Positions 520-8,185 of a stretch of 64,000 nt of DNA are shown here, one piece after another. The DNA lies in NCBI GenBank assembly GCA_033442325.1, contig JAWQFM010000011.1:1194201-1258200 (forward strand), read 5' to 3'. The position numbers and the translations under genes were made by a program. This stretch comes from Salpingoeca rosetta. Taxonomy: Eukaryota > Protista > Choanoflagellata. The notes beneath the pieces were generated by a model. It was not told the origin of the DNA. It was given only the letters and a program-made list of their open reading frames with translations, and ran no database searches. The first letter of the stretch is position 1. Each line of letters opens with the position of its first letter.

Positions 520-2644
520 TTAGTCCACGCGTGCGGGCTTGCTGCTGCTAGCGAAGCGGCGCGAGGCGTGGCGCAAACTGCGGTCACTGATGAAGAGGAG
601 CGCCTTCATGATACCAATAAATATCAGGTTCACGGGCCACGCCAGGCACGCTGTGAGCACGGCGTTCAGCACAGGCGTGTTGTTCATGTAGACCATGCCA
701 CACCACCGGGAAATGAGCACCAGTGCCCGTGTTCGCAGCCACCTGGGCCACGTGGCAAACGACGCCAGCGCCAGCCGGGCCGCTTCAGGCGTCACAGCGC
801 GCTCCACCTGCCGTCGTCGCTGCTGTTGCTGTTGTTGTTGCTGTTGATGTTGTTGATGCTGTTGGTGGTGCTCCTTCTGCTGCTGCTTTCGCTCCCTCGT
901 TTCCTCCTCCCCCTCCTCCTCCTGTCGCAGTGGTGGTGGTATGGCCGAGTCCAGCGCCAGGGCGAGGGCAACTGCGTCCTCAATGGCCAGGCACGCGCCC
1001 TGGCCAAAGTGGTGCACCACAGCATGCCCTGCGTCGCCCACCAGCACCACGTTGTGGGTGTACTGCGGTACGCTGCGGCAGTCATACACATCGGTCTGGA
1101 TAATGTCCTCAGGCCGGGTTGCCTTGATGATAGTCTGTATCTCTTCATGGAACCCGCGCGTCTGCTCTAACAGAAACGGCACAACATCATCAACCGGGAT
1201 GTCCTGTGTGTGCAGGGAGTGCACAGCGGAAACGTGATTCACGCGATGTGTGTGAGAGAGGGGGGGGGAGGGTGAGAGAGGGTGAGAGGGTGAGGGTGAG
1301 AGGGTGAGGGTGAGAGAGAGCGGAACGGCACGAATGGCCCCAAACCTCACGGTTGCAAGTACACCCGCACACACACACACACATACACACACACACACAC
1401 ACACACACACACACACACACACACACACACACACACACACACACAAACACACACACAAACACACACACACACACAAACACACACACACACGCACACGCGC
1501 GCGCGCGCGCACGCACGCATGTATGCATACACACACCTTGGGGTGCTGCACGTCGAGAACCCAGAAACACCGGTCGTTTGTGGTCCAGCCACAGGTGAAG
1601 GAGACGTTCTGACCCGTGGGATGAACAACCGTCTTGTACATGCAGTGTGCACGGGCACATGCCAGCTGCAGCACGGCTGGTGGGCACTTGTCAAGGAACC
1701 CCCGCCAGCACGACGCCCCGCTGTACCTCAAGCAGCCATCGCCAAAGAGGCAGGAGCGCACGCGCGACCGTGCGCCGTCCGCGCCCACAATCAGCGACGC
1801 CTGCATGCGTGTGCCGTCCTCAAACACTGCGACCGGGTGGCCCGTGTCGGCGTGTGCCAGGCCGGTGAAGCGCTTGCCCGTGGTGAGGCGCCCGCCCTCG
1901 CGCACAAACACGTCCATGAGTGCCTGCTGCAGTTCGCCGCGGTGCACGTTGCACTGGACGGAGCCAAACTCCCGTACAAGGTCGCTGTCGGATGCAAGCG
2001 GCACCTGGAACAGCCCGCGGCCGTCATAGCGCCGCAAGGACACGTTGGTCTGCGGCAGGCCGATGGTGCTTGGCAGGTCGATGCCCAGCGTGCGCAGGAT
2101 CGGCAGGCTGTGCCCAATCACGCTCATGCCAGACCCGGCATCCTTCATTCGCTTCACCTGAGTCAAGGGCATGGCGGGGGGGGGATGCGAGAAGTGGTGC
2201 GGTGGTGGTGCGGTGGCAGTGAGTCGTGATGCGGTGGCGATGCACTGGCACAGTTGGTTCAATCTTGACTCACTCACTCACTCACATGCACATGCACACG
2301 CACACACACACACACATGCACATGCACACACATACACACACATGCACATGCACACACACACATGCACACACACACACATACACACACATGCACACACATG
2401 CACATGCACACACATGTGCACTCACCTTGTCGACGAGGTGAACGCGGATGCCCGCACGCTGCAAGCAGATGCCGAGCGTGAGACCCGAGATGCCAGCGCC
2501 AATCACCAACACCCGCTGCGTGTCATCCTCCCTCTCCTTGACCACTGGAGTCGTGTTGCTTGCCATGCTTGACCTGCTTGCCATGCTTGACCTGCTTTGC
2601 TTCTTGTTTGTCGTCAGTGGTTGCCGTTGTCCACGTTGCGTCAT
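520..2644 (-). CDS. FAD-dependent (class A flavoprotein) monooxygenase, 3 exons (2644/2584-2426, 2157-1537, 1203-520)
   Basis: The spliced product has the Rossmann motif [11 protein letters not shown], the DG motif [12 protein letters not shown] and the GD motif [25 protein letters not shown]. Both GT-AG introns are phase 0. There is a polyQ/E insert and a hydrophobic C-terminus. Start is ambiguous (ATG at 2644, 2584 or 2566). Confidence 0.9.
2557..2597. repeat. 18-bp tandem duplication (TGCTTGCCATGCTTGACC x2.3) at the monooxygenase 5' end
   Basis: Read directly. Each copy contains an in-frame ATG on the minus strand ([11 protein letters not shown]). Confidence 0.85.
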
Positions 2645-2676
2645 TCACGGCCTGCAAAACAGTGCAATCATCTCGC

Positions 2677-4636: not shown

Positions 4637-7600
4637 TCAGTGTGCGTGCTGCTTCGCTGTGCCATTGTCGTTGCAAGGCCTGAATTGCTCAATGACATCA
4701 GTGGATATGCGGTCCGGTGGCGAGAAGGATAGCCGCTCCAGCAAGGACAGCAACGCCTGGATTTGCAGCGCACGTGCCTCTGTGTCGATGCGCTTACGTA
4801 ACGCCACCAGGTAGTCGAACGTGTGCTGGAGCGCTTCTGTCTGCTGAATCGTCTCCAGCGCCTATGCATGCATGTGTGTGCGTGTATGCACATGTGTGTG
4901 TATGTGTGTGTGTGTGCGCATGTGTGTGTATGTGTGTGTGTGTGTGTGTGTGTGTGTGCATGCACGTGTGTGTGCATGCATGTGTGTGTGCGTGTATGTG
5001 TGTGTGCGTGTATGCACGTGAATTAGGGGGACCACACGTGCGACAGACTCGGGCCCTTTGTACATGGAAACAGGCTGACAACTTCTGCAATTGACTGGCC
5101 GCAGCGCATTATACCTGTGTGATCTCGTCAAAGGAGGGCGCCTGCTCTGCGTAGAAGAGGCGAAGCACGCCCTCATATCCGCGCAGCCGGTTCTGGATCT
5201 GAAGCAGTGGTGGTAGTGGTGATGGTGGTGGTGGTGGTTGGTGAAGAAGGCAGTGAGTGGAAGGAGAAGGAGTTGTTAGCGAGCTTGCAGTAGTGTCGGG
5301 AAAAGTACCGACGCATACACATGGGCGCACCATGTGGATGATGGGGTATGAAAACTTCCGCTCATGGATATCGTCGCAGAAGCCTTTCTTGAGCCAGTAC
5401 ACGGGGTCATCGCGCACCTGAGCATGCCACGGGTGTGTGTGTGCATGTGTGTGCATGTGTGTGCATGTGCATGTGTGTGTGCGTGTGTGCATGTGTATGT
5501 GTGTTAACTCGGGAGGTTCAGTGAGCCATGAAACGCTCAAGCACACAACACACAACACACAACACACACAGTTGGTGCTGACCTGGAAGAAGACACCAAC
5601 ATCCTCAAAGAGCGCCGTCATGCGCTGCTCAATGTGCAGTGGCTGCAGCCATTCCCGCGCAAACCTGGATAGCCCAAGCTGACACACCGATAGAGGGGGG
5701 ACGCAGAGGGGTGTGAAGAGGTTAGTGAGGATTGGAGTGAGGGTGTGTGTGTGTGGGTGTGTGTGTGAGCGTCGGGTGTAAGTAGACATGGTGCAAACGA
5801 CATGTGTGTTCACGAACTGTGCTGCACGTGGCTGTGGTCAACAGCATGTCCACAAGAACTCGTGCAAACATTCATGAAGATGCTGGCAGAGACACGACCA
5901 CGCACAGGCACACGCAACCACAAACCATGTTGCAGATGGATTGCGCGGGTGGGACAAGCGCACTGGAGAGGCGAACACGCCAGTCTGTGCTGTGGAGGAA
6001 GAACAGCTGACACGACAACACAAATGGCGTCGACGTCTTGCCCTGTGTGTGTGTGTGTGTGTGTGTGTGTGTGTGTGTGTGTGTGTGTGTGTGTGTGTGT
6101 GTGTGTGTGTGTGTGTGTGTGTGTGTGTGTGTGTGTGTGTATGTGTGTATGTGTGTATGTGTGTATGTGTGTATGTGTGTGTGGCGTGTGTGTATGTATG
6201 TGTGTGGTGTGTGGTGTGTGTGTGTGTGTGTGTGTGTGTGTGTGTGTGTGTGTGTGTGTGTGTGTGTGTGTGTGCATCGTGATCAGTTGGCTGCACCACC
6301 ACCATTCGCAGCACCACCAGCAAATTCAACGTAGCCCGCGCCAGCTTGAGGACTACGGATCTCACGATGCCACACGCACGCGCACCTTGACCATCTCCAC
6401 ATATTCGTCGGCGGTGGGGCAGTACTGGTTGTCGCGCCAGTAAATCTCCAAGCCCTGTGCAAGGAGTTGCAGAATTAAACACCGGAGCGAGCAAATGCCA
6501 GGTGAGCGAGGAATGCGGGGACTTTGATGCGCATGCGTGCGTGTATTTGTGCGTGCTGTGTTGAGTGTGTGTGTGTGTGTGTGTTGTTGTTGTTGTTGTT
6601 GTTGTTGCTGTTGTGTTGAGTGTGCTGTGTACTGCGAGTTTGCGATGTGTGCGATATACACGCAATGTCCTCTGTGATAACGTGCGTACAGAACAACACA
6701 TCCCATGAACACACGTGTACAGAGAAACACACACCAACAGCGCACCTGTCCGCGGTGTGCACGAACGGTTCCGTCAATCAACAGACGGATGGTGTTGTTG
6801 TGGTGACGACGAAACAAGCGCGGCACGCTGTCGATCAGCTTGAACGTCAGAAAGTATGCACTGTTCAGCGTGGCCGGAATCTGATGTGAATACATGCATG
6901 CATGCACGCGCGCACGTGAGGGTGAATGGAGTGTAGCGTGTGCAGCGTGTGAAAGTTAGCCACGTCCAAGAATGCAGCACGTGGAGTGAAGAGACACCCA
7001 AGCTTAGCCGGCTGCAGCATCCAACATGCTACAAAATACAAGCGCACATACACGCACATATGCAGAAACACACACGCACACACGCACACACGCACACATG
7101 CACGCAGGCACACACATGTACACACGCAGACACACACACATGTACATTAACGCAGGCACACACATGAAAACACGCGTACACACACACGTGCACACACGCA
7201 TACATGCATGTACATACCCACAAACATACACGTGCATGCACACGCAACTGACCCCAAACTTGAGGTGTGCACAGGGACGGTCACGCCGAAGCGTAGAGTG
7301 GTCTTCGATGTCGTCAATGACGAGCGAGAGCTCATGGAAGCGGTCGACACTCTGCATGAGACTCTTGAGGTCGTGTGGGTGGATCTGGAAGTTGTCAGCA
7401 AGCGCCTTGATGCTCTTGCTACGCACGCCCTTTCCCGGGTTGTCAAAGACGTACAGGCAAGGATCGACAATGTGATAGTCCAGCAGCTCGTCCAACGCGG
7501 TGGTGAATGAGGGCACGGTCTTCTTGCTGGTGTTGAGCAGCCCCGCAACCAGCGGGTGGAAGGAGCGAATTGCACGCGCAAGCCATGGTGTGCTTGACAG

Positions 7601-8185
7601 CGCGTATGCGGATGCACTCAGCCGTACTTCTGGCAGCAAAGCAACCTCGTGGCCACGACACCGGCACGCACGCGCGACGTCGTCCAGCTCGTTTGGCTTC
7701 AAGACTGCAAAGAACAGCCAGTCGAGGTGTGCGCTGGCAGCCCCGGCGGTGGAATCCACCTTTGTCCCTGCAACTGATGAGGATGGTGAATGCGGGTCGC
7801 CACGTTGAGCTTGGATGACACCCCCGGAGTCCCGCTCAGGGTCCTTGTCGTTGTCATCATCACGGGTGATTGGAAACACGGTGGCGAACTGGAGCTTGGT
7901 CAGCCGCACGCTCGTGCCCATGGTCTCCAGCGCCTTGTTGATGTGGTGCAGGGCTGTTGCCGCTGGCTGGTCTTGGAGTGGGCATTTGTCCACGTGAAGG
8001 AACACGTCGTAGTGGCCGCCACCTGTACTTTCATCAGGAAAGGAGCAAACGGCAACGCGTCGGTCAGCGCCATCGTCTGCCAACACGACCGACACAGACA
8101 CACTGCGGTCGCACGTGGCAGGTGCAATGTCATGGGTTGCTGCCGCCACAGTGGCAGTGGCAGCTGAAACCTTGTCGTTGCTCAT
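4637..8185 (-). CDS. Type III geranylgeranyl-diphosphate synthase-like trans-prenyl synthase with ~230-aa N-terminal extension, 8 exons (8185-7253, 6880-6746, 6454-6386, 6042-5926, 5678-5583, 5417-5331, 5198-5115, 4861-4637)
   Basis: PGKGVR; FARM LVIDDIEDHSTLRRDRPCAH; AHRGQGLEIYWRD..CPTADEYVEMVKGKT; GVFFQVRDD; KGFCDDIHERKFSYPIIH. All joins are canonical GT-AG in phase 0. Confidence 0.9.

Follow-up and report, generated by a model that had tools for sequence, protein, structure and literature searches.

UBIAD1 and MenA are UbiA-fold membrane prenyltransferases that carry two Asp-rich motifs and work with a partner synthase of the geranylgeranyl diphosphate synthase (GGPPS) type. A similar combination is found at positions 520 to 8200 of a 64-kb stretch of the genome of the choanoflagellate Salpingoeca rosetta (the whole of that stretch is referred to here as the window), where three adjacent genes encode a FAD monooxygenase (FMO), a UbiA-superfamily prenyltransferase with the same two motifs, and a prenyl-diphosphate synthase (PPS). 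The animal genes are not clustered, whereas the S. rosetta UbiA gene lies beside its own synthase and an FMO and belongs to a rare clade of its own. The ubiquinone enzymes Coq1/IspB, Coq2/UbiA, Coq6/UbiH and Coq3/UbiG fill the same four chemical roles as an extended form of the module found in other genomes, but the three cluster enzymes lack orthology to Coq1, Coq2 and Coq6, and the choanoflagellates have no linked methyltransferase.

Fungal clusters (paxG/C/M/B; Pyr6/Pyr5/Pyr4; Trt2/Trt8/Trt5/Trt1) likewise unite a dedicated GGPP synthase with a prenyltransferase and a group A FAD monooxygenase; PaxC itself is not a UbiA enzyme. The locus described here differs from these clusters in that no cyclase partner is apparent, its FMO is like ring hydroxylases, orthology to the fungal genes is not evident, and its distribution spans protists and giant viruses. 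Bacterial phenolic-lipid operons, such as those of the srs type and the Micromonospora los locus with its UbiA, methyltransferase and type III polyketide synthase (PKS) genes (PMC7587189), share the logic of an aromatic ring modified by alkylation or prenylation, by methylation and by oxidation, but they contain a type III PKS and the eukaryotic and viral modules contain none. Plant CoqF (At1g24340) provides a precedent for a bacterial-type group A FMO that was recruited by a eukaryote and hydroxylates a prenyl-quinone ring (PMC8559556), although CoqF belongs to another FMO subfamily and is unclustered.

Results

Layout of the three genes

A first-pass annotation of the window had described adjacent FMO, UbiA and GGPPS genes, the first two head-to-head about 120-180 bp apart and the third converging on the second, and this layout was borne out. 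Pfam matches above the curated cut-offs were obtained for FAD_binding_3 (open reading frame [ORF] 520-2277, minus strand), UbiA (ORF 2765-3949, plus strand) and polyprenyl_synt (ORF 7004-8215, minus strand), and the public annotation (GCA_000188695.1, GL832964.1, where the window corresponds to about 1,194,201-1,258,200) lists the same three genes with products of 507, 394 and 586 aa. All three are intact; FMO and PPS have introns and UbiA is a single exon. The features of the locus are as follows.

520 to 2644, minus strand: gene for a group A FAD-dependent monooxygenase, 507 aa, exons 2426-2644, 1537-2157 and 520-1203 (Pfam, GT-AG model)
2645 to 2764, no strand: divergent intergenic region between FMO and UbiA, 120 bp, candidate bidirectional promoter (sequence reading)
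2765 to 3949, plus strand: UbiA-superfamily aromatic prenyltransferase, MenA/UBIAD1 clade, 394 aa, one exon (Pfam, motifs, profile search)
4637 to 8200, minus strand: PPS gene of the type III GGPPS kind, exons 7253-8200, 6746-6880, 6386-6454, 5977-6042, 5583-5678, 5331-5417, 5115-5198 and 4637-4861 (Pfam polyprenyl_synt, exon-by-exon tblastn, GT-AG sites)
7451 to 8200, minus strand: N-terminal extension of PPS, about 250 aa (weak fold and language-model support for Nudix)

The start codons of FMO (2644, minus strand) and UbiA (2765, plus strand) leave 120 bp between them, and the stop codons of UbiA (3949) and PPS (4637) converge with 687 bp between. Within the 120-bp spacer, a candidate bidirectional promoter, a 14-bp unit, CTCCACTTGACACR, is repeated three times in tandem (2678-2719), and the CTCCACTTGACACR repeats are candidate shared regulatory sites of the two genes.

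Conserved linkage in other genomes

The same gene families are adjacent in at least nine further loci from divergent lineages, in varied orders and orientations. The loci were found with UbiA, FMO and synthase homologues and are given L-numbers below; C-numbers denote contigs of the S. rosetta genome. Whereas the S. rosetta order is FMO (minus), UbiA (plus), PPS (minus), the neighboring genes elsewhere are arranged as follows.

Monosiga brevicollis: PPS (minus), assembly gap, UbiA (plus), FMO (minus)
L189 and L190: FMO (plus), PPS (minus), UbiA (plus)
Third contig, from JGI/NCBI, 4,718 bp: FMO (plus), PPS (minus)
L191: UbiA (minus), PPS (plus), FMO (minus)
L010, an AT-rich contig: FMO, cupin, methyltransferase, UbiA, PPS of 570 aa
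L003 and L004: methyltransferase, UbiA, FMO
L005 and L006: FMO, then UbiA
L009: PPS head-to-head with UbiA
L098, GC 20%: UbiA, methyltransferase, cupin
JGI contig of 7.6 kb: ribonucleotide-reductase small subunit, PPS, UbiA, methyltransferase, cupin, FMO

L189 (GC 64-66%) comes from a compact eukaryote with an NDUFAF7-type gene. In L099 and L100, UbiA has no partner within about 2-3 kb, and the L008 contig is uninformative because it ends 495 bp upstream of UbiA. Across the eukaryotic loci, UbiA almost always has a head-to-head arrangement with a single partner gene, be it FMO (S. rosetta), PPS (L009, L189) or the methyltransferase (L003, L004, L010), and in M. brevicollis UbiA and PPS are divergent across the assembly gap; this recurrent pairing suggests shared divergent promoters. 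The genes are arranged and oriented differently at nearly every locus, a pattern that marks selection for linkage. Judged by gene order, the trio is a functionally linked biosynthetic cluster and not a chance neighborhood, and its occurrence in both S. rosetta and M. brevicollis indicates that it predates the split of the two lineages.

The partner methyltransferase scores 147 bits against a cut-off of 103 for the UbiG/COQ3 model and matches the structures of Escherichia coli UbiG, and the partner cupin matches quercetin 2,3-dioxygenase. In L010 the cluster adjoins four ORFs of 256-263 aa (L010:12968-18639), none of which has a Pfam hit.

The family to which the UbiA protein belongs is rare, with 29 members among 1.84 billion representative proteins at E <=1e-30 and about 15 at >=45% identity, and no relative was found in a scan of IMG/VR. 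In maximum-likelihood trees the cluster-associated UbiA (99/99) and FMO (100/100) sequences each form one clade well apart from their bacterial relatives, with the choanoflagellate sequences grouped together and the virus-type sequences in a subclade of their own. The bacterial UbiA relatives (about 30% identity; Chloroflexota and Myxococcota) have no FMO or synthase neighbors and no consistent neighborhood across 80 genome and 77 metagenome loci, apart from a few loci where a type III PKS and a methyltransferase are nearby. In the metagenome contigs L127 (L127:9833-13300) and L129, a distant bacterial UbiA relative, a type III PKS and a UbiE/UbiG-like methyltransferase, itself a distant relative of the partner methyltransferase, stand in a row flanked by KaiC and histidine-kinase genes; this row is a candidate prenylated phenolic-lipid operon.

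A giant-virus version of the cluster

On L007 (Logan SRR29492106, 16.2 kb, GC 40%) the module is joined to mevalonate genes (490-10096), in the following order.

L007: CarF-like lipid desaturase, 3-hydroxy-3-methylglutaryl-CoA (HMG-CoA) reductase, MVD+PMK (mevalonate-diphosphate decarboxylase and phosphomevalonate kinase) fusion, type 1 isopentenyl diphosphate (IPP) isomerase, UbiA, methyltransferase, cupin, FMO, PPS

The IPP isomerase that adjoins UbiA is a separate, bona fide gene. PPS is followed by a YqaJ gene and an intein-bearing ribonucleotide reductase. The nearest Atlas clusters of the YqaJ protein are all from Nucleocytoviricota (0.98-0.99), and because of this we take L007 to be giant-virus (Nucleocytoviricota) DNA.

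The UbiA protein

The UbiA gene product matches Pfam PF01040 at 70.7 bits (cut-off 34.2) and has an exact copy in the public protein set. Its N-terminus is disordered and His-rich. Both motifs of the superfamily, NxxxDxxxD (NEYGDYEAD) and PDxxxD...K.T (PDRHGDAAAGK.T), are present, and among 19 homologues N116, D120, D282, D286 and K291 are invariant while D124 and T293 are nearly so (>=90%). A profile of the family searched against solved structures gave UBIAD1 as the best match (E 1.2e-14, 57.5 bits, near full length), followed by AfUbiA and digeranylgeranylglyceryl phosphate (DGGGP) synthase. The models for MenA equivalogs scored far below their cut-offs (NF004749, 53.5 bits against 277; TIGR00751, 24.5 against 102), and the ubiA_proteo model gave no match on the UbiA gene of the window. 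As placed by these comparisons, the protein is a separate branch near the MenA/UBIAD1 clade; an assignment as UBIAD1 orthologue was rejected, given low similarity in the alignment and a clade of its own.

The first-pass annotation had pointed out that proteins of the UbiA type can be terpene cyclases (Fma-TC, EriG). Such cyclases carry NQxxG/AxxED as motif I and DxxDxxxD as motif II (PMC13483135). A cyclase assignment was also rejected, since motif I (NEYGDYEAD) and motif II (PDRHGDAAAGK) of the S. rosetta protein are of the prenyltransferase type.

The FMO

The three-exon GT-AG model of the FMO gene yields exactly the annotated 507 aa, with introns full of (CA)n. Its product, a group A enzyme, scores 38.8 bits with PF01494 (cut-off 22) and contains the GxGxxG, GADG and GDAGH..GQG..EDA fingerprints and a low-complexity Q/E insert; its C-terminal tail is hydrophobic. 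Exon 1 carries two copies of an 18-bp direct repeat, TTGCCATGCTTGACCTGC (2560-2595, minus-strand coding), which doubles the peptide SRSSMA in the disordered N-terminus.

Among NCBIfam models, PRK06847, HpxO and 3-hydroxybenzoate 6-monooxygenase all matched below their equivalog cut-offs; the scores for HpxO (101 bits against 500) and salicylate_mono (46 against 446) denote similarity only. The COQ6 model gave 25.7 bits against a cut-off of 489. The nearest relatives of solved structure are NicC (6-hydroxynicotinate 3-monooxygenase; E 1e-37 with the L007 copy), HpxO, salicylate hydroxylases, and the decarboxylating 4-hydroxybenzoate and vanillate 1-hydroxylases, with TropB, SorC and AfoD next in line. 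Phenolic rings are the substrates of every one of these enzymes, several of which hydroxylate with loss of a carboxyl group. The FMO thus resembles, in its sequence, aromatic and often decarboxylative ring hydroxylases.

The prenyl-diphosphate synthase and its N-terminal extension

With intronless homologues as guides, tblastn and GT-AG sites gave an eight-exon model of PPS that encodes 569 aa, compared with the 586 aa annotated; one boundary differs, and the last intron is 4862-5114. PF00348 matches exon 1 at 56.4 bits. The proposal of a type III GGPPS in the first-pass annotation holds for the first Asp-rich motif, DDIED without the two-residue insertion (VIDDIEDHSTLRRDRP), and fails at the second, where S. 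rosetta has RDDPVYW (5394-5417, in the predicted exon model) in place of DDYxN. In M. brevicollis, L007 and L010 this motif is (R/K)DDYIN, and it reads RDDYINL in M. brevicollis and other homologues. RDDPVYW may be genuine, and could then affect activity, or it may be an error of the splice model. At the position that we take to correspond to Tyr107 of the yeast enzyme, the cluster PPS clade has T, F, V, M or L.

Extension-bearing synthases of 538-570 aa are found in L189, L191, L009 and L010; the N-terminal extensions are homologous in L009, L189, L191 and P0036 and more weakly so in L010 (19% identity). In six homologues the extension gave no Pfam hit at E up to 5 and contained no intact Nudix box, and BLASTP found no similarity between it and the IPP isomerase of L007. 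An AlphaFold model of poor confidence (pLDDT 47.5) had as its top Foldseek matches nearly all Nudix proteins (E >=0.05), and the protein-language-model neighbors of the extension are Nudix clusters (0.88-0.89). It is plausible that the extension is a degenerate domain derived from a Nudix/IDI protein.

Housekeeping paralogues and genomic context

The first-pass annotation had called for a search for housekeeping copies elsewhere in the genome. A canonical GGPS1 is present on contig C2 (IDDIEDNSKLRRGIP..., ANYMYF), farnesyl diphosphate synthase (FPPS) on C19 and COX10 on C10. Since GGPS1 is encoded elsewhere, the cluster synthase is not the housekeeping copy. COX10 and the cluster gene were the only UbiA-family genes detected in S. 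rosetta. Exon-by-exon family searches of the genome turned up no COQ2, COQ4, COQ6, COQ7 or long-chain synthase; first-look candidates numbered zero for COQ4, COQ7 and the long-chain synthase, and the five scored for COQ2 and six for COQ6 were not convincing. Three collinear short matches to the UbiG/COQ3 model, of 26-42 residues each, at C4:1562903-1564313 (minus strand) look like a multi-exon COQ3 gene. Since this COQ3-like gene is visible only in pieces, the exon-by-exon COQ negatives are weak.

No methyltransferase, cupin or IDI homologue was found by tblastn anywhere in the window. The next annotated gene to the right of the trio encodes a protein kinase, and on the left the 7.7 kb that precede the window are free of genes in the public annotation. 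Long (CA)n/(GT)n tracts dominate the introns and intergenic DNA (1206-1536, 3950-4400, 5700-6350 and elsewhere) and produce many spurious long ORFs on both strands. The presence of these tracts throughout the introns indicates that the genes are resident eukaryotic genes and not contamination.

Discussion

What might the cluster make? The three linked genes very probably work together as a small pathway whose product is an aromatic lipid, prenylated and oxygenated, and on balance we favor the view that the region from 520 to 8200 is a dedicated three-enzyme module, inherited as a unit, that makes a prenyl-hydroquinone/quinone lipid. In such a pathway, the Nudix-like/GGPPS-type synthase, distinct from the housekeeping GGPS1, would supply a prenyl diphosphate, most likely C20 geranylgeranyl and possibly somewhat longer. 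UbiA, working within the membrane, would then attach the chain to an acceptor of phenolic or carboxy-aromatic type, for example 4-hydroxybenzoate or a naphthoate- or menadione-like ring. The FMO would hydroxylate the ring, perhaps removing the carboxyl group in the process, to give the prenyl-hydroquinone/quinone lipid, and in some lineages O-methylation by the UbiG/COQ3-family enzyme and further oxygenation by the quercetinase-like cupin may be added. We infer the acceptor, the chain length, the regiochemistry of the FMO and the product, which might act as a redox carrier, an antioxidant, a signal or a defense compound. The idea of the first-pass annotation that the locus is a real biosynthetic cluster is upheld by a linkage that has been kept in many lineages despite rearrangement and by the separate GGPS1, and its suggestion of a specialized prenylated and oxidized lipid, possibly a quinone, is still the best reading. 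Linkage in other genomes, which it had proposed as a check, was found in M. brevicollis, in environmental contigs and in giant-virus DNA.

Several observations weigh against a prenyl-quinone pathway of this kind. All three S. rosetta proteins miss the NCBIfam equivalog cut-offs. Solved structures do not separate ring hydroxylases from olefin epoxidases of the PaxM type, and the virus-type FMOs also match the Pfam family SE (squalene epoxidase), at 25-49 bits with a maximum of 48.8. With the L010 proteins as queries, S. rosetta yielded neither the methyltransferase nor the cupin partner, and the choanoflagellate product may consequently differ from that of the five-gene versions. Where S. rosetta has RDDPVYW, M. 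brevicollis reads RDDYINLVDPAYW, and S. rosetta has six residues fewer right after the motif; it is possible that the S. rosetta synthase could be impaired by its atypical second motif.

An alternative is that the trio follows the logic of fungal meroterpenoid or diterpenoid clusters, which we think unlikely. The set of a synthase, a prenyltransferase and a FAD monooxygenase does mirror the pax, pyripyropene and terretonin pathways, the virus-type FMOs match SE, and the methyltransferase partner could parallel Trt5/AusD. The analogy with pax and pyripyropene, drawn in the first-pass annotation, survives as one of logic only. At none of the loci examined is the trio joined by a conserved cyclase-like gene (no direct homology search with a cyclase reference was made), the UbiA motifs are those of a prenyltransferase and not the NQxxG/AxxED cyclase motif (PMC13483135), the methyltransferase is a ring O-methyltransferase of the UbiG family, and the solved enzymes closest to the FMO are ring hydroxylases. 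At other loci, the UbiG-family methyltransferase and the quercetinase-like cupin suggest that the ring of a prenyl-quinol is tailored, rather than epoxidation and cyclization of the pax or pyripyropene type.

Housekeeping quinone synthesis, in which the trio would replace or supplement COQ1/COQ2/COQ6, or would act like UBIAD1 with GGPS1 to convert naphthoquinone from prey into a menaquinone-4-like vitamin K, strikes us as a still weaker candidate, though it is the main rival and the one hardest to dismiss. In its favor, COQ2, COQ4, COQ6, COQ7 and the long-chain synthase went undetected in S. rosetta, and COX10 and the cluster gene were the only members of the UbiA family detected there; the synthase, prenyltransferase, hydroxylase and UbiG-type methyltransferase parallel Coq1, Coq2, Coq6 and Coq3, UBIAD1 is the nearest solved relative of UbiA, and group A FMOs derived by horizontal gene transfer took over ubiquinone hydroxylation in plants (PMC8559556). 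Those COQ negatives are weak, however, as they come from exon-by-exon searches, and the synthase is of the short-chain GGPPS type. In addition, UbiA is distant from UBIAD1 and falls below the MenA cut-offs, a very rare family is ill-suited to an essential pathway, orthology of the trio to Coq1, Coq2 and Coq6 is lacking, and no obvious mitochondrial presequences were seen in the proteins (by eye only). That three unrelated isoprenoid and redox genes with no pathway in common lie together by chance is the least credible explanation and in our judgment very improbable. Eukaryotic gene order is mostly not functional, but the same families are neighbors in at least nine further divergent loci with differing orders and orientations, and the UbiA and FMO families are rare and monophyletic.

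A bolder and distinctly tentative reading is that the trio is the core of an ancient mobile prenyl-quinone module that has moved between protists and giant viruses. The module would be nuclear in choanoflagellates, in the GC-rich compact eukaryote and in AT-rich protists, and in Nucleocytoviricota it would travel with IPP isomerase and mevalonate genes to specify a viral redox or signaling lipid in the infected cell. One NicC-like flavoprotein would then perform the decarboxylative ring hydroxylation that is assigned to COQ4 in canonical eukaryotic ubiquinone synthesis. The literature that we searched contains no paper on a giant-virus mevalonate/UbiA module.

In keeping with the first-pass annotation, which knew of no characterized cluster of the sort in choanoflagellates, the searched literature holds no description of the cluster, and it contains no paper linking UBIAD1 or COQ genes with choanoflagellates. 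A '1,4-dihydroxy-2-naphthoate octaprenyltransferase' of M. brevicollis was listed among horizontally acquired genes by Yue et al. (2013), who described no cluster (PMC4046809); this gene is probably the UbiA gene of the M. brevicollis cluster.

Outside fungi and plants, few conserved metabolic gene clusters are known. The cluster described here is small and intact, and S. rosetta is amenable to genome editing (PMC7314544), which makes it experimentally tractable. The identity of its product could reveal a new eukaryotic prenyl-quinone or prenyl-quinol that serves as a carrier, antioxidant or signal, and could give a compact three-enzyme route to such compounds. The cluster could also be the source of a candidate enzyme that hydroxylates prenyl-hydroxybenzoates with decarboxylation. 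Finally, the giant-virus module, positioned beside a lower mevalonate pathway that is nearly complete, would represent viral metabolic reprogramming of a new kind.

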